Of a stretch of DNA of 64,000 nt, positions 22,947 to 60,590 are shown piece after piece. Where the stretch lies: contig NC_068988.1 of assembly GCF_001194135.2 (NCBI RefSeq), positions 3,743,245 through 3,807,244 of the forward strand, in the 5' to 3' direction. A model generated the notes under the pieces. It searched no databases and was not told the DNA's origin. It saw only the letters and a list, made by a program, of their open reading frames with translations. The stretch's first letter is position 1. Each line of letters opens with the position of its first letter. This stretch comes from Octopus bimaculoides. Its lineage: Eukaryota. The position numbers were made by a program, and so were the translations under genes.

Positions 22947-23274
22947 CGTTAGGAAGGGCATCCAGCTGTAGAAACTCTGCCAAATCAGACTGGAGCNNNN
23001 NNNNNNNNNNNNNNNNNNNNNNNNNNNNNNNNNNNNNNNNNNNNNNNNNNNNNNNNNNNNNNNNNNNNNNNNNNNNNNNNNNNNNNNNNNNNNNNNNNNN
23101 NNNNNNNNNNNNNNNNNNNNNNNNNNNNNNNNNNNNNNNNNNNNNNNNNNNNNNNNNNNNNNNNNNNNNNNNNNNNNNNNNNNNNNNNNNNNNNNNNNNN
23201 NNNNNNNNNNNNNNNNNNNNNNNNNNNNNNNNNNNNNNNNNNNNNNNNNNNNNNNNNNNNNNNNNNNNNNNNNN

Positions 23275-23353
<79 letters not shown>

Positions 23354-28759: not shown

Positions 28760-29047
28760 ATAACCATGAGTAGAATATGGAGATAAGGACAAATGACTGA
28801 GATCTTCAGCGATGTGCCATGCTTGAGTAGAAGATCTATCAAGCCAAATGAAATGAAAGTGCAGACATGGCAGATACTGGGGTCATGCAATTGGCACCCA
28901 TTACACTCTCAAAGTGGTTGGCATTAGGAAGGTCATCCAGCAGTAGAAACCATGCTAAATCAGACTGGGGTCTGGTGCAGCTGGCCAGCCCTGATCAAAC
29001 TGTCCAACCCATGCCAGCATGGACAATGAACGTTAAATGATGATGAT
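28760..29047 (+). mobile_element. Family A element with RTE-type tail
   Basis: ...cacccattacactctcaaagtggttggcattaggaaggtcatccagc...gaacgttaaatgatgatgat. Confidence 0.8.
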
Positions 29048-31842: not shown

Positions 31843-34536
31843 AAATTAACCAAAATTTGCAAACTTTAAAAGATATTAACTCTTTTTTTATTGGTTTGTG
31901 GGGAAAATGAATTTCATGTCAATGATTAGAATACAAAACTACATCATTACGCCCAACATGAAATCAATTGGAACAGAAATTGAAGAAACTGTAAAATGAA
32001 CAGCCAAATAGAAAAGATCAGTCCATTTCTTTTACTGTGATGTTTAACCCCAGCTCAACTGGGATGAGTAGATCTTTGGGTAAAGGCTTTCTAGCCATGA
32101 CTATCTCCCCTGTTTCTCAAACATAATGCATTTATGATAATATTATATGATTTTTGTTATAAGTAGGTAGAGTTGAATTTGGAGTAGACTTAGCTGTTAT
32201 TTTCAGCAGGTCAAACAACTTAGATGTTTCTTTCTTGATGTGAATGCTGAATTTCATATATTTGTAAGCGTATGTGTGTGTGTGTATATATAGCTGTTAG
32301 TTTGAGTAAATGTGCATGTATATCAATAGATGGTTATCTATGTGTATGTATGTGTGTGTATCATCATTGAATATTAGTTTTTATTCTTTAGTCGAGCAAA
32401 TTGACTCCAGGACTTATTCTTTGTGAGCCTAGTACTTATTCTATCAGTATCTTTTGCCAAATCGCTAAGTTACGGGGACATAAACACACCAGCATTGGTT
32501 GTTAAGCGATGGTTGGGGGACAAACACAGACACGCACACACACACACANNNNNNNNNNTATGACAGGCTTCTTTTAGTTTCCATCTACCAAATCCACTCA
32601 CAAGGCTTTGGTCAGCCTGAAGCTATAGTAGAAGACACTTGCTCAAGGTGCCATGCAGTGGGACTGAACCCAGAACCATGTGGTTCGTAAGCAAGCTACT
32701 TACCGCACAGCATGTGTGTGTATAGATGTTAGTTTGTATGCAGAAGTTAGCTTGTGTGTGTGCTTGTGTAGAAATTAGTTTTTGAGTGTTTGTGTGTATT
32801 ATTGTATATTGAATGTATGTTTATAATCAGTCACTTTGATATTTCACTTACTCAAACATCATCAACAATGGGAATTTAAAAACAAAGTCGATTCACCTAA
32901 TCTGCAGGATTCTTACGCAGCACAAATCACTACATTAAATTATTTAACAGTTCACACTTCAAATTAGTCCATAATTGAATACACTCATTGACAGATTATT
33001 TATGTAAATGAGACAGTCTGTGTAGATAAACATGAACTATTGTACATTTTGATTTATTATGTATTGTATGCTATATCTAAACTTTTCTATATAAATACAC
33101 TGTTACCTCATATGTACACCAAATTATTATTATTATTATTGTTGTTGTTGCTGTTGTTGTTACTCATAAGATGGCAAGCTGCCAGAGTCATTAGCATGTC
33201 AGGCAAAATGCTTTGTCTGTGGTTGGGAAACTTGCTTCCCAACCATGAGGTCTCAGGTTCAATGCCACTGCATGCCACCTCATGCATATTTATATTTGTA
33301 TATATATTTTTATATATATATATACACGCACATATATGTATGTATATGTGTGAGTGTGTTTGGGTGCGAATACTCAGGTCTTAACATTAGGGAACGGTTG
33401 CAAACAAGCTTTACAGTCATACAGTCTTCACTTTGACATTCAGAGCATTGGGCAGAAATCACATCGCATTTGTACGTTTTTTTTTTTTTCTTGTTTCAAG
33501 TTATCTATGAAAAACATGCTTGGAAACTGGTGAGATTTAGCAGCATGAAGGGCATCTGCCCAATAAAAGCTGCCATGACAACTTTTGTCTGACCCATGCA
33601 AGCATGGACAAGTGGATGTTAAACAATAACGATGATGATGATGATGACCATTAAAGTCTATATATTTTGTGTGCTTATGTCTCCCCATCCAAATCTATAT
33701 CAACATATACATGTATATATATATATATAGCATGTTTTAAGCCAGTTATTTAGGTTTTCCAATGTGACAACCTTGATTCTTTGAATACTGTTTCCAAATA
33801 TTTCCCTTGAAAATAAATTCTGATAATCCAACAAAAGCTGTGTGGAATTTTTATTTGCATCACAACACAAGATTAGGTTGTAAGAGCTGTATGTGATGAT
33901 TAGCATCTTAATTTGAGCAGCACTCAGTGGTATTTGAAGCCTTTCCTAAAATATATGGTAAAGCACTGATATGGCCTTCTCATTCGATGCCATTACGATC
34001 ACTAATGAGATACCTAAATGTAACATATATCAGAAGAGAAGCTAAAGAAGCCATAAGCTGAAAATCCAAATATCTCTTGAGCAGGCTATTACAGACGGAA
34101 TGTAACGAAATTAAAAAGAATCTCTTGAATTTCATTTTCTTTCACATCAATTTGTTGATATGTATGCAAAATGGGCTGAACTCACCAACATGTAAATCTT
34201 AGTCACATCCTTCAGCCTCCTTACAGCATGCATTCTATTTTAGTGCGCAACTAAGGACAGAATGAAAAGCAAAATAGAGATCATTATCACCATCACCGGT
34301 TTTATGACTCCTCGTTGCTATGAGGTGGATGAGTTAGCAACAGCAGAATATTTCCATTTGTCTTCATTTTATGTTGCTAATACTATGAGGCTCAGCTTCT
34401 TAAATCTGATTTTAACCTATATTTCCATATGTTCTCCATCTGCTATTACATTGATTACTACCTGCCCCATTAACCCTTTCTAGTTCTCTCCCCTCACCAT
34501 GTATCAACCTTTTTGTACTGCATATCCTTTGTCCAT

Positions 34537-36560: not shown

Positions 36561-37399
36561 CTTCTCTTCAAAAGCTTTTAAGCACAAATTTCAATTTAAT
36601 CTTAATTTACACTATCTGGAACAAATTTGCAGAAATTTTCATTAATAAATATCCATTTTTTAAAAAGTTATGTGGGAACAAATTTTGATGGAGCAGAGTT
36701 CTGCAGTTATACCATAAATTTACTAAATGAGTGATATGAAATGAATAAAGACTTCAAAGAAAAATTAGACGTAACATATCAGAAAAATTATAGAAATTGG
36801 GAATCCAATGTGTAAATATTATTTAGTGATGAGCAGAAAACTGCCCAGAGTATCCGATACATGTGTCCATCTTATTCTTTCACTTACATTGGTCACTGGA
36901 TTGTGGCCATGATGACATGTTGCCTTGTTGGAGTGGGGTTAGCTGGTCAGACCAATGCCAGTACTAGCACACACACATCAAATTCATCAGATTCTGTCAA
37001 ACTATCCAACTCATGCTAATATGGAAAACAGATGTTAAATGGTGATGATGAAGATGATTGTGATGATATCTATATATATATATATAATGGCGGTGCCCCA
37101 GCATGGCCACAGCTCATGAGCTGAAACTAGATAAAAAATGAAAAATATATATATGTATGTGTGTGTGTGTGTGTGTGTGATCATCAACAGTTCACATATC
37201 TGTAACAGATAATTATAAATCCCAGCCAACATAAAACGCAGCATGGTAATTTATTTATCCAAACAAATTATATCAATGATCAATTGGAGCGGACATGTCT
37301 GTGCATTGGTGTGTATGTGTGTATCTAACAGTGTATATAATGAATGTCTAGTTGGGTGTATAAGTATGTATGTATATGTATAGTATCTATAGTGTATGG

Positions 37400-37589
37400 C
37401 ACGTAAAAAGCACCCACTACACTCTCAAAGTGGTTGACGTTAGGAAGAGCATCCAACTGTAGAAACCTTGCCAGATCAGATTGGAGCCTGATACAGCCTT
37501 CTGGGTTTCCAGCCCTCAGTCAAACCGTCTGACCCATGCCAACATGGAAAGCAGACGTTAAACAACAACACTGACAATGATGATGATGT
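37400..37589 (+). mobile_element. Family A RTE-tail element inserted into the left arm of the RPB1-associated inverted repeat
   Basis: cacgtaaaaagcacccactacactctc...gacgttaaacaacaac...gatgatgatg. Removing it rejoins gacca|ccatacacta, which is contiguous in the right arm at 38607-38621. Confidence 0.85.
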
Positions 37590-37610
37590 TGGTCCTAATT
37601 CTCCATAAGC

Positions 37611-38567
37611 TTATGTTTCTTTTTCATCATCATTAGTTGAGTTGTAAATCAGACTGGCTGGAGAAGGTTTTGGTAAACTAGGAGAATATGTGGGACTGGC
37701 TGGAGAATATTTAGGACTTGTGGAGCTGGATGTAGGGCTGTGTTTCAGACTGGTGGGTAAGGAACTCAGACTGCTAGGACTGTAGCTAGGAGAGCCAGGA
37801 TTATAGTTGAGGTTGGTGGAAGAGTATGAAGGACTAGTTGGAGAATATGAAGGGCTGGTAGCACTGTAATTAGGAGAGGAAGTAACTGGGGCTTGCTGGA
37901 CTATAACTAGGGCTAGTCAGAGAATAAGATGGACATGTTGGGGAATAAGAAGGACTGTTTGGAGAGTTAGAAGAAGTGGGGCTGTAGCTAGGACTGGTTG
38001 GAGAATACAAGGGGGGAAGTAGGATTAAAACTAGGACTGGTAGGAGAGTATGATGGACTAGTTGGGGAGTAGGAAGGGCTGGTTGGAGAATGAGTGTGAC
38101 GTTGGGCTACAAGAAGGACTGATCGATGAGTAAGATGGTGATGTTGGGCAATAGCTTGGTGAAGATGGAGAATAAGCAGGACTTGGAGGGGAATATGATG
38201 TGCTTGATGGAGGATAGCTTGGGCTGTGTGGTGTCATAGCTGCTGACACAGGTACATAAACAGAAGATTTAGGTGAATAAGTTGGAGACAATTGCTCCAC
38301 CAGGGCTTGGAATGTAAGCACTGGCTGGCAATGACGGAGATATCCACTAAGGGACGACCAGTATGTGGTGTAGCCAGGACTGCAACTACTTTCACTTGCA
38401 GCTGACGGTGAAAAGCCAGCACCACCAGGAGTCATTCCACTTCCAATAACAGGGGACCAAGGGCCGATATAACCAGGTGTGGCATGTGTGAGCCATGGTG
38501 TGGTGACATTCTAGTCACAAGACTTCCACCAGATCCAAAGAACATTCCAGTGCTCACACCAGTACTG
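37611..38567 (-). pseudogene. POLR2A: Frameshifted orphan copy of the RNA polymerase II largest subunit 3' end (linker, CTD heptad repeats, acidic tail)
   Basis: Across frameshifts the minus strand reads GVSTGMFFGSGGS...MSP/TPWLTHATPGYIGPWSPVIGSGMTPGGAGFSPSAASESSCSPGY.../SPSLPASAYIPSPGGA/LSPTYSP..., then about 28-30 heptads (several exact YSPTSPS), ending [11 protein letters not shown] (TAA at 37611-37613). This matches the conserved RPB1 linker TGMFFGS...TPW...WSP...GMTPG.AGFSPSAAS and the CTD. At least five frame disruptions; no upstream catalytic domains in the window. Confidence 0.92.
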
Positions 38568-38718
38568 ATGATGATGATAAAGAAACATGAGGTTATGGAG
38601 AATTAAGACCACCATACACTACATAAACTATGCATATACATATGTACTTACACACACACACACACACACACACACAGAGACACACACACACACACACACA
38701 CCAATGCACAGACATGTC
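38564..38718 (+). repeat. Inverted second copy of the RPB1 terminal codons, stop and downstream sequence
   Basis: act gat gat gat gat aaa gaa aca TGA ggttatggagaattaagacca matches the minus strand of 37637-37590 at 43/48. The next block matches 37/44 and the final block acacacacacaccaatgcacagacatgtc 28/29. Both arms stop at GACATGTC (37292-37299, 38711-38718). Confidence 0.9.
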
Positions 38719-38796
38719 TGAGAAAGAAGCACACTCTAAAGTATTAGAGCAGCAAGTTTTTAGAAAGTTAACTTTTAACTTCCTGGAACCTGATGC

Positions 38797-39077
38797 CAGT
38801 GGTGAACTGGGTCTAAAAATATTGGTTGCCAGGAGACTAAGGGGGCCCACCTGCAACTACAGTGCTATCATCTAATTTAATTGTTTTTGTTTTTTTTGTT
38901 AAAAGTATTCTTTTCAACTGTCTACAAACACAGCCAGGCAGAAATAATTAATGCATTCTTCCAGGAGTGAATAAAGAACTCTCAAACTTGAGGGGATGGG
39001 CCCCCATATATGGATTCTAATGATACAGGGGCCCACTTGTCATCGGGGAAGCTGGCAACCTGGCCAGTCCGCCACTG
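38797..39077. mobile_element. hAT-like MITE, 281 bp
   Basis: TIRs cagtggtgaactgg / ccagtccgccactg match 12/14. Flanking 8-mers cctgatgc and tctggtac differ only by three transitions, consistent with a decayed 8-bp TSD. Confidence 0.6.
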
Positions 39078-42000
39078 TCTGGTACAACCCTCTGGCTTAT
39101 CAGTTTTAGTCAACCCGTCTAACACATGCCAGCATGGAAGCCAGACGTTAAGTGATGATGATGAGGATGATATATATTTGTGTAAATAAGTATATACATG
39201 TATACGTAGGTGTACTCGAGTTCAATGACAACTACAACCAGTTTTTTTCCCTCACTTAAGATTGATAGAGTTGGAAAGAAAACTTTTATTTTGAAATATA
39301 TATCTTGAAGTTCCACCTGAGAACATATTAACTGACATATAGTAAAGACACAATTACAGATGATGAGTTTAATATTTGTGAAAGCTTATATTAGTAGAGA
39401 GTGAATTCAGTTGAAAAATAAACACATGCCTTCAAAAACTGTATTTAATGAAGTGAGTCAGATGTGATTTTGAAATATTTATTTACAAGCTACAGACTTA
39501 TAATGTTTCAATGGCTTCAAGTTATTCACCCAAAATTTAATATTTTAAACCAGAAATGGTTCTGAATTATGTTTTATAACAAGAAATATGTTTTTATTTT
39601 TCCTTTCTTTTTTTATTTCTGTGATGCTGGAGAATATAATTCAAATTGATAAAACTATGATATTTTCATAGATTGAAAAATGGGTAAGGAACTTAAAAAT
39701 TGAAAATTCATTTTGAATTTTGGTTTTATTAAATTTCAGTTTGAAAATATTCCCAGCACAATTTTTTGTCTGCATTTGTTGGTATTTAATGCTTTTTAAA
39801 AAAAAACATTTTGAAATGTCCAAGTCAGAATTTTCTAAGTAATATATATTTTTATCTGAAACACATCAATTTGATAGACTTAGTCAATGTGAATGTCAAA
39901 ATATAGCAGCACGGCCTTAGCCAGCAGAAAGAAACAAGAGTAGGGGAAGAAGGGGTTTGGCAAACCATGGTGAAAGTTGAATCACACCTTTATCAGTAAA
40001 AACAAAAATCTGGTAAGGATTGAGCTGCCATCTTATAAGAACCTTTTACACTACTTTTGGACTCTTTTTTGGTATCAAGTTGCGGCAGGAGCTTTCTCAA
40101 GCTTACAAAAAGATTTCCTGCTTTTCATATCTGAAAGTTAGATGTTCGCACTTTAGGAATATTTAGTCTGTTTAGAAAATACTGGGGTTAGAAATAGATA
40201 TTTCTGGTCTGATGGTGGTTTAAAGGAAAGTAATTGGTATGGAGCAGGAAGTAATTTGTCTGTTCTGATTTGTACTGTGTGATTTTGCATATATTTTCCT
40301 ATATAGTGGCATTTCGGCCATCTTTATGTTCTGAGTTCAAATATTGTTGAGGTTGGCTGTGTCTTTCACCCTTCCAGGGTTAATGAAATAGGTACCTGTG
40401 AGTACTGGTGGTTGATGAAATCGACTAATCCCGACCCCATCAAAAATTCAGGCCTCGTGTAGAAAGGATACACTGTGGTCATTATTACATGAAGCTAGCT
40501 GGGATTTGATGAGTGAGGTTAGATGGAGCATGTTCGAAATGACCTCACTATCAAAAGGTACACAAGCACATGTTGTAGCACTAATACACTGAAAGGGGGT
40601 CAGGACGTTGGTATTTCAATATGTGGGTTAATTTTATTTGAAGATACCCCAATCTTGAGTAGAGAATAAAAGTGGTGCAGGTAAAACTTAGTTGCATCAT
40701 TATCTTAAGAAACCCAAGAACATAACTGTGGAGACCATTCAAATGGAGGAAGATCCTTCAAATGAAAGGTGGCTGTATTCTTATGTATTTTACAGAGAAG
40801 CAAAAGGCACACTGTTTTTTTCCAGTGGTTGATGAAATAAATAAAGGCGATGAGGTACCAAAGAATATCTTGAAATGTGTTTCAAGTAAAGCTGAATGTG
40901 TACAAATTTCTGCATCATCTCTATTCTGACTGCTTCATAGTACGGTGGAGAAACAAGCTTTCATAAGTAGAAATCGAGTTTCCTATTGATGTGTTATCTC
41001 CAAGCCAGAGTAAAATGGAAGTTGTGTTGACCAATAAACCTTTAACTATAAGTGACAATCATATCTGGAATTAAAAATTGAAAAAATCGTCAATATCAGT
41101 TCTGGTTTGTGCTGTAATTACTGGTATATTTCAATATGCTCCAAAATATGTTCCCACTTACTACACCGTGGGGGGCCAGGTTGGAATGTTTAGAATTAGT
41201 TAATAAAAATTTCTTTTCTCAGTTATTTCTCTCGGTCTCTGCTGAACACATTTGCTGAGTCTGTTAAACACAAATCTATCTATAAAATATATGACAAAGT
41301 AGATTTATGAATAAGTCTTTTCAGAAAGTGTGTTCCAACTAAATCCACCTTCCTCTGTATTATGAAGTAAATTTTCAAATGTTGAATCTACTTCACTCAT
41401 TTCATATAATTCATTGCAAAACTATTAAACGGTGTTTTTCTTTTTAACACAAGCAAGGATTACTGATTGTGGCTGTCTTGCATATAATTCCGAAATTGAA
41501 TGCTTCCTTCTAAAATTCATTTAACTCTATCATTCAAATACAACTTACTTAAATAGAAAATAAGAAAATTCTTCAAGTAAAATTAGTATTTTTACTATTT
41601 TACCATTTCTATGTATTACTACTTCAATATATCAGAATGGTAACTGATTAAATATTAGAAATAGCTGAATATTCTACATATTGAGAGTTAAACTCTCAAT
41701 TAAACATTTTGTGAAACTGAAACTTCTTTAGACATAAATATATTATGTTTACAATGATGGAAAGATCGTATTGTCAGGCAAGACTAACAAACATATCATC
41801 AGAAATCAGTGGGGAAATGTAAACCTCTTACAAGCTTATAAGTGAATTTTTGTTAAAGAGTAAAACTAACTTTGGGAATGAGTAACATTGGTTTCACCAT
41901 CTCCCTATCCCAAGCCTGATCAAGTTTGTTTCTAGTCTCTAAGAATGTGTTATTCTTTTATATGGAGACATCCTAACTTTACTAACTCATTTGGCATTAC

Positions 42001-42936: not shown

Positions 42937-43130
42937 TCATCATCATCATCATCATCGTTTAACGTCCGCTTTCCATGCTAGCATGGGTTGGACGATTTGA
43001 CTGAGGACTGGTGAAACCGGATGGCAACACCAGGCTCCAGTCTGATTTGGCAGAGTTTCACAGCTGGATGCCCTTCCTAACGCCAACCACTCAGAGAGTG
43101 TAGTGGGTGCTTTTACGTGTCACCCGCACG
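42937..43130 (-). mobile_element. Young family A element (RTE-type tail, CpGs retained)
   Basis: (cat)n cgtttaacgtccgctttccatgctagcatggg...gctggatgcccttcctaacgccaacc...ttttacgtg. Confidence 0.85.
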
Positions 43131-55068: not shown

Positions 55069-55105
55069 GATAGAGAAAGCTTATCTATCTATTGGTTTAC
55101 ACACA

Positions 55106-55605
55106 CACAAGAGTTGGCTGAAGAGTCAATAGGCTGACCAAGACACTCCCATGGAATCTGACCAAATGAGACCCCCTTGCAGTTCTCACACTTCTTCCAT
55201 CCGTTTTGCAGTATTTGGATCCCATTGGTCAAGAAGCTTTCATTCTGTCGGTCAAAAAACTCATAAACAGCAGATATGGCATCATCATCATCACTGCGAT
55301 AATGGTTTCCAGCCAAGTGTTTTTCCATGTTGGGGAACAGATGTAGCCATATGGGGGTGGGGTGATCAACCACTTCAAGGCTGCAGTCATGCACAGCATC
55401 CAATGAAACTAAGGACTTATGTACTGGAGTATTATCTTGATGAAACAAGACCTCTTCCATCAGTTTTCTTGAGCATTTGGTCTTGATAACCTTTTGTGAC
55501 TGCTTCAGTAAGTTGGCATAGTAGACATCATTGATGGTGTGGCCTTTTTTGAAGATAGCCAATAGACACAATGCCTTTTGCATCCCAAAAAACCGAGGCC
55601 AAAAA
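55106..55605 (-). mobile_element. Mariner (DD34D-type) transposase 3' remnant with one TIR
   Basis: ASVFWDAKGIVSIGYL/HTINDVYYANLL...VLFHQDNTPVH...VVDHPTPIWLHLFPNMEKHLAGNHYRSDDDDAISAV...GWKKC. The YSPDLAPSD motif is deleted. TIR-like cacaagagttggctgaagagtcaatagg at about 55106-55133. Confidence 0.85.
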
Positions 55606-60179: not shown

Positions 60180-60235
<56 letters not shown>

Positions 60236-60236
60236 N

Positions 60237-60590
60237 NNNNNNNNNNNNNNNNNNNNNNNNNNNNNNNNNNNNNNNNNNNNNNNNNNNNNNNNNNNNNNNN
60301 NNNNNNNNNNNNNNNNNNNNNNNNNNNNNNNNNNNNNNNNNNNNNNNNNNNNNNNNNNNNNNNNNNNNNNNNNNNNNNNNNNNNNNNNNNNNNNNNNNNN
60401 NNNNNNNNNNNNNNNNNNNNNNNNNNNNNNNNNNNNNNNNNNNNNNNNNNNNNNNNNNNNNNNNNNNNNNNNNNNNNNNNNNNNNNNNNNNNNNNNNNNN
60501 NNNNNNNNNNNNNNNNNNNNNNNNNNNNNNNNNNNNNNNNNNNNNNNNNNNNNNNNNNNNNNNNNNNNNNNNNNNNNNNNNNNNNNNNNN
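60237..60590. other. Assembly gap (largest of 11 N runs)
   Basis: Other N runs: 6724-6733, 9479-9488, 10157-10433, 12670-12679, 22997-23274, 32550-32559, 51805-51822, 52488-52527, 54873-55023, 59972-59981. Most abut TA/TG microsatellites. Confidence 0.95.

Follow-up and report, generated by a model that had tools for sequence, protein, structure and literature searches.

How did the C-terminal end of RPB1, a gene that is usually single copy, come to stand by itself in a 64,000-nt stretch of Octopus bimaculoides DNA (the window), and does it still do anything there? An earlier note, made from the letters of the window, had described a linker, about 30 heptads and an acidic tail without the polymerase core, and this description is confirmed by translation, tblastn and HMMER. 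Between about 38567 and 37611, the minus strand translates as STGVSTGMFFGS / TTPW..GMTPGGAGFSPSAAS / YIPSPGGA, followed by heptads and NDDEKET with a stop. It begins with 6 nt that match the penultimate exon (GTACTG, 38565-38560) and passes directly into the equivalent of the last exon, which comprises the linker, some 30 degenerate heptads, the tail TNDDEKET and a stop codon at 37613-37611. The heptad region encodes 213 amino acids, or about 30.4 heptad equivalents, with YSPTSPS occurring exactly four times. Six changes of frame interrupt the reading path, near positions 38498, 38340, 38291, 38091, 38011 and 37880. A 125-amino acid open reading frame noticed earlier at 38058..38435 is present on the minus strand.

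The linker region (38495-38220) aligned in tblastn with residues 232-333 of the RPB1 fragment P0001. A full HMMER library scan returned RPB1 C-termini as the best matches, led by P0121 with E=5.9e-23 over linker and heptads together. By these comparisons, homology to RPB1 goes beyond low-complexity resemblance. Other searches were less productive. With the stitched translation as a word-index query, only heptad-rich protein fragments of at most 539 amino acids were returned, and the linker alone found no protein match; the full HMMER scan offered only distant or chimeric gene models for the RPB1 C-terminus. The degenerate heptads of the copy went unscored in Pfam, Rfam gave only sub-threshold chance matches on microsatellites, and an exact-product look-up of the 125-amino acid frame found no recorded gene. 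In two public gene models among the matches, P0121 and P0126, the C-terminal part of RPB1 (domain end, linker and CTD) follows an unrelated N-terminus, peptidase-like in one and transporter-like in the other; both are probably annotation chimeras. Separately, annotated proteins of Mytilus spp. (P0010, P0018, P0026, P0033 and P0071) combine MATH/USP7-type domains with RPB1 CTD heptads (Pfam PF22486/PF00917 plus PF05001); these may be genuine polymerase-detached CTD-like arrays in molluscs.

The copy is real DNA. Contigs from the DNA runs of three studies tile 37593-38666 with zero differences from the window, at depths over the copy (~10-15, 41-56 and 60-69) equal to those of the unique flanks, and the stretch is present in DNA runs of at least nine samples of the same organism across the three studies. 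A second version, about 92% identical, occurs at equal depth in the same runs and is the parent gene, which sits on separate contigs with its own intron. At 80% identity or more, copy and parent are the only two loci in the genome (eight contigs at 99% or above, four at under 95%). Since independent DNA runs reproduce the window with zero differences at single-copy depth, the frameshifts are genomic. The earlier note had itself raised the alternative of a mis-assembled last exon of the true RPB1 gene, an account that would explain the similarity between the two sequences and nothing more. Against it, the same DNA runs contain the two versions side by side, each at single-copy depth; three studies agree to the letter on the window version, including every frameshift and an inverted junction described below; and the parent contig enters an intron at the point where the window enters an inverted tail. 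This explanation is refuted, and we give it next to no credence. Tblastn detected no other RPB1 exon linked to the copy within the 64 kb, and the orphan status proposed for it thus holds. The assembly of the window is of draft quality and rich in microsatellites, with runs of N (assembly gaps) at about 10150-10450, 22990-23280 and 60230-60590, each between (TA)n / (TATATA)n microsatellites.

The parent was reconstructed indirectly, from DNA and RNA reads and contigs matching the copy at 80% identity or more. It is expressed and in frame, and differs from the copy by about 7-8% substitutions (56/752 nt; 71/888 nt). In parent mRNA reads, an indel relative to the copy lies at each of the six frameshifts (+7 at 38498, −2 at 38340, −1 at 38291/2, +2 at 38091, −1 at 38011 and +5 at 37880); it is therefore the parent that is in frame and the window copy that is broken, and the 'several' frameshifts of the earlier note become six. 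At 38560 the parent DNA contigs depart from the mRNA path into ..tttatttgcag/GTGTGAGC, and at 38565 the parent mRNA reads go on into the upstream exon, ..GCATGCTTGGTACTG/GTGTGAGC. From 37593 to 38550, parent DNA and RNA show identical structure, and in an outgroup (organism E) one contig spans acceptor site to stop. Linker, CTD and tail are thus one terminal exon of the parent. The lack of introns had been taken as a sign of a retrocopy; the copy is indeed intronless, but because the copied part of the parent is a single exon, this says nothing about retroposition.

Some features of the parent are worth recording in their own right. Its tail, as reconstructed from mRNA reads, ends in ..YSPTDDDDDKET and a stop. 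Near 37623, the acidic tail of this species' parent has five D, with one additional GAT (Asp) codon, while the parents of organisms B, D and E, and the short inverted arm of the copy, have four; the length of the tail thus differs among species. Parent mRNA depth falls about fourfold at ~37335 (the equivalent of 37330-37340) and stays low down to ~37204, which could reflect a proximal polyadenylation site in the parent or a loss of mapping in an indel-rich microsatellite stretch.

Is the copy itself expressed? Our evidence covers three raw RNA runs from one study and the k-mer shares of older runs. Nearly all RNA reads that match at 80% identity or more do so at 90-95%, and the numbers at 99% or above are 0/1283, 0/892 and 1/780. 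At diagnostic sites, about 100% of RNA reads show the parent letter. The unique flank at 36847-36972 collected essentially no RNA reads, and the older RNA runs contain just 0-2% of the copy's 31-mers. The copy is transcriptionally silent in the runs examined. Nor does it bear marks of constraint: among the 54 substitutions listed (of ~90), 42 are nonsynonymous and 12 synonymous, a nonsynonymous share of 78% compared with 75% expected at random, so that its decay is neutral. Many of the substitutions destroy heptad Tyr1, Ser2/5 or Pro3/6. With six frameshifts, a neutral substitution pattern, at most one read per run at 99% identity or above and one frameshift in common with the copies of two other species (B and D), the locus is a fixed, dead, non-functional fossil, and the earlier note is upheld in calling this orphan piece of RPB1 dead and truncated on its 5' side.

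The earlier note had also suggested a function, either as a CTD-like decoy peptide made from the 125-amino acid frame or as antisense or hairpin RNA that regulates RPB1. That frame does exist, and the two inverted arms of the locus could pair if they were transcribed. The decoy peptide has against it the near absence of matching RNA, the neutral substitutions, the lack of any gene record and the fact that both limits of the frame are set by frameshifts peculiar to this species, which makes the frame a recent accident. The RNA idea fares no better, given the lack of pseudogene-specific RNA in three RNA-seq runs, the silent flanks and the small share of 31-mers in older runs. A functional element of either kind is very unlikely; a hairpin RNA made from the arms in some other tissue and directed at the RPB1 3' end is far less likely than the cDNA snap-back discussed below.

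The copy is ancient. Contig sequence carries on across the boundary of linker and inverted tail in two other species, organism B (38517-38605; 38524-38605) and organism C (38440-38600). Organisms B and D each have two contig types at about equal depth, one parent-like and the other of pseudogene type, and the latter carries the 2-nt deletion at 38091 together with many window states. In organism E, only the parent was detected. Because B and C share the junction, and B and D the 38091 deletion, the copy had acquired its inverted arm and one or more frameshifts before these speciations; because B and D share derived substitutions as well as that frameshift, it was already dead before the species split. 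In organism D, 19 of the 38 informative rows are substitutions shared with the window and 19 are window-specific; the copy is roughly twice as old as the split between this species and D. Lesions found in this species only are the 7-nt deletion at 38498, those at 38340, 38291 and 38011, and a large loss of heptads. As a separate observation, the substitutions shared with the B and D copies cluster in the heptads (37640-38057), whereas differences in the linker (38243-38512) are nearly all species-specific, and the B and D copies are without the linker frameshifts. This pattern may reflect conversion by the parent gene in one lineage, or uneven decay.

The comparison with the parent also bears on the length of the CTD array. 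The earlier note had proposed that the copy preserves an older state of the array, and here the evidence points the other way. The parent array is longer, with an extra ~320 nt at 37740, 21 nt at 37833 and about 43 nt at 37973, and the same interval measures 1355 nt in organism E against 946 nt in the copy, a difference of about 19 heptads (~30 in the copy vs. ~49 in functional RPB1). The long form is common to the parents of this species and of the outgroup E, and the copy in organism B is still parent-like in continuing through 37739/40. The large (~320-nt) loss thus arose in this species' copy, and the shorter array is the product of later deletions. The copy resembles a functional RPB1 CTD in its linker motifs, its YSPTSPS-type heptads and its acidic tail; it is unlike one in being off the polymerase core, frameshifted, short of heptads and unexpressed, with many tyrosine, serine and proline positions mutated.

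Two features of the locus were not part of the earlier description: an inverted duplicate of the tail and 3'UTR, about 160 nt long, at the 5' end of the copy, and a SINE that entered the 3'UTR later (Table 1).

Table 1. Parts of the RPB1 copy and adjoining repeats, in window coordinates.
Feature	Position	Strand	Evidence
Short inverted arm: second RPB1 tail (TDDDDKET, stop TGA 38588-38590) and ~130 nt of 3'UTR	38564..38721	+	Inverted repeats; parent 3'UTR reads; junction in organisms B and C
Main RPB1 pseudogene body	37611..38565	−	Sequence; translation; parent mRNA indels; parent intron/exon boundary 38560/38559
Copied 3'UTR, first 25 nt (long arm, proximal)	37586..37610	−	Inverted repeat; parent mRNA loose end GTTTCTGTAGTGTATG/TTGGTCCTAATTCT joining ~37392 to 37589
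SINE-like high-copy repeat with (GAT)n tail, within the pseudogene 3'UTR	37400..37585, limits ± ~3 nt	+	Parent reads skip it; k-mer depth; other copies
Copied 3'UTR, distal (long arm)	37204..37399	−	Parent mRNA reads align to ~37204; 3 differences over 37204-37257
(CA)n(TA)n microsatellite	37143..37183	.	Sequence; microsatellite depth; ~20 nt past the last parent-mRNA homology

The short arm adjoins the 5' end of the main copy in opposite orientation, and within it, at about 38650-38702, a (CA)n tract has expanded. Reads from the parent 3'UTR align with either arm, and the parent proceeds ..gacatgtcTGAtcc. The inner junction has a 2-nt microhomology (AC, 38564-38565) and the outer junction a 3-nt ambiguity (TGA, 38719-38721), where the short arm tracks the parent for 3 nt beyond its match to the long arm. 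The long arm runs at least 85 nt past the end of the short arm (37292), and holds at least ~220 nt of copied 3'UTR in all. Between them, the arms have different private changes and no shared derived change relative to the parent, and the junction is shared across species; both observations argue that the inverted duplication arose when the copy was made or shortly afterwards. The SINE, missing from both the parent mRNA and the short arm, arrived after the copy had formed.

We looked for the usual traces of retroposition around these boundaries. No A-run occurs at the end of the parent-mRNA homology (~37204), and the poly(A) end of the parent could not be located from RNA loose ends; speculatively, the (CA)n(TA)n tract might be the remnant of a poly(A) tail. 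No direct repeat, as expected of a target-site duplication, was found between the sequence beyond 38721 and that below ~37204, where boundaries are uncertain and flanks repeat-rich. Part of the upstream flank is unique and part consists of short repeats, and a search for an empty site through copies of this flank found no second copy in the window and no coherent consensus for the sequence before the junction.

The neighborhood is dense in repeats of several kinds, and its SINEs and microsatellites give a cephalopod-like impression. The SINE-like family is about 190 nt long with a (GAT)n tail, and has a k-mer depth 10^4-10^5 times that of single-copy sequence. Further copies lie at 36981-37142, ~39050-39170, 42938-43119, 3805-3953, 28894-29037 and 33587-33646, and three in the same orientation fall within 2.2 kb around the pseudogene. 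A sharply bounded, MITE-like repeat of 82 bp (38797-38878), with TA-rich sequence before it and T-rich sequence after, is present in thousands of copies in organisms A (this species), B and D, and a separate segment of about 60 copies (38714-38755) begins at the outer junction of the inverted arm. Farther away, a 164-amino acid open reading frame on the minus strand (55089-55583) looks by eye like the C-terminus of a mariner/Tc1-type transposase (..HQDNTPVHKS..LFPNMEKHLAG..); it had no Pfam match at E<=0.01, and an exact-product look-up was empty.

What process produced this arrangement? The reading we hold to be the probable one, with a good measure of doubt, is that spliced RPB1 mRNA was reverse transcribed into a processed pseudogene, which is truncated at its 5' end and has a non-canonical inversion there. 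From flank to flank, the copy consists of an inverted piece (tail to UTR position ~+130) followed by a sense piece (6 nt before the exon junction to UTR position +220 or beyond). This topology is that of a product of target-primed reverse transcription by a LINE with 5' inversion, and fits such an origin. Twin priming was reportedly described by Ostertag and Kazazian in 2001 as the source of 5'-inverted L1 insertions. In its canonical form, the template of the inverted cDNA is RNA that lies upstream of the part copied into the sense cDNA, with a small gap or overlap between the two; overlaps have a median of 12 bp. Inversions of the 5' end are found in 13% of human polymorphic processed pseudogenes and in about 20% of L1 insertions, and such an inversion with microhomology at the junction is a known LINE hallmark (PMC12016303).

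The copy shares with 5'-inverted L1 insertions and pseudogenes an inverted 5' segment, two pieces derived from the same transcript, and microhomologies of 2-3 nt at both junctions. It differs from the canonical products of twin priming in that its inverted piece, the tail and proximal 3'UTR, lies wholly within the range of the sense piece, an overlap of about 160 nt. With processed pseudogenes at large, it has in common that it is an orphan copied from the 3' portion of an mRNA and unlinked to its parent, that it carries 3'UTR and apparently reaches 6 nt across an exon-exon junction, and that it is frameshifted, neutrally decaying and unexpressed. It is unlike them in having no recognizable poly(A) tail or target-site duplication, and the usual intron test is inapplicable to a part that is intronless in the parent.

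Much of the decision rests on six nucleotides. GTACTG (38565-38560) matches the upstream exon of the parent at 6/6 positions and the intron at 3/6, and the loose end of the parent RNA lies at 38565, compared with 38560 for DNA. This match is to be read with its limits: only 2-3 nt discriminate between exon and intron, two of the six are equally assignable to the inverted arm, and in the copy of organism C one discriminating base is in the intron state. At the other end, the copied 3' sequence is, as far as can be detected, entirely covered by parent mRNA reads. Because of the exon-junction match and the confinement of the 3' sequence to transcribed UTR, we favor the RNA route. The same two observations lend support to the retrocopy claimed in the earlier note, while the poly(A) tail and target-site duplication that were not found speak against it, and a 5' end that falls within 6 nt of an exon boundary is, for a retrocopy, an unexplained coincidence.

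That coincidence is one reason to consider a duplication at the DNA level, in which the terminal exon of RPB1 and the sequence downstream were copied by FoSTeS/MMBIR-like template switching and then decayed. The copy begins almost at the parent intron/exon boundary, and lacks both poly(A) and target-site duplication. Events of this type typically yield inverted duplicated segments joined by 2-3 nt of microhomology, so that the inverted duplication and its junctions suit replication-based rearrangement as well as they suit reverse transcription, and the full overlap of the inverted piece departs from canonical twin priming. Yet the 6 nt upstream of the exon boundary agree fully with spliced mRNA and only by half with the intron; the copy includes no intron sequence and nothing that has been shown to come from outside the transcript; and a breakpoint so near the acceptor would be just as coincidental for DNA as for RNA. 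We regard duplication at the DNA level as rather unlikely, and capture by a DNA transposon (Pack-MULE or transduplication-like) as highly improbable. In the latter, the arms would be terminal inverted repeats of ~155 nt around an RPB1 fragment, and they do bound a unit of ~1.3 kb. These 'TIRs', however, consist of sequence from the RPB1 tail and 3'UTR, and the unit occurs once in the genome. Neither a target-site duplication nor, between the arms, any sequence of transposon origin could be identified, and this reading is close to refuted.

We therefore return to reverse transcription of spliced mRNA, where we infer both the RNA-mediated origin and an inversion at the time of insertion. A LINE enzyme would have copied spliced RPB1 mRNA from its 3' end to a point 6 nt past the last exon-exon junction, where cDNA synthesis would have halted. 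To that 5' end a further, short cDNA (tail and ~130 nt of UTR) would then have been joined in inverted orientation through microhomologies of 2-3 nt, either in an event like twin priming or because the enzyme took its own nascent cDNA as a new template. Full overlap of the two pieces would require two template molecules, strand displacement, or a nascent-cDNA 3' end that snaps back onto its own 5' part, and the 2-nt AC/GT pairing would permit such a snap-back. In the snap-back variant, the enzyme would meet the end of the RNA, or a block, near the exon junction, after which the cDNA would fold onto its own 5' part. That the full-overlap inversion and the truncation 6 nt before the exon junction together represent a non-canonical outcome of reverse transcription, such as long-range cDNA snap-back, we consider improbable but worth stating. 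The shared 2-nt frameshift followed before the species split, and the remaining changes came later, in this species: five more frameshifts, the loss of ~19 heptads, the insertion of the SINE into the 3'UTR and growth of the microsatellite.

The copy is an ordinary ancient pseudogene of a well-known kind, with a mildly unusual inverted 5' junction, and its importance overall is small. It does carry a caution: where the parent region is a single exon, a copy that looks intronless offers no argument for retroposition. As a dated, neutral heptad array, it may show, on a small scale and in nature, how CTD repeats degrade and drop out when selection is absent, and its inverted junction adds a data point on the mechanics of retrotransposition beyond mammals. 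If the snap-back outcome is true, and recurs among retrocopies of this lineage, it would be a signature of the LINE enzymes at work there. For RPB1 itself, the locus means that a gene usually kept as a single copy left behind a partial copy, now dead, which is older than the split among at least three of the sampled species.
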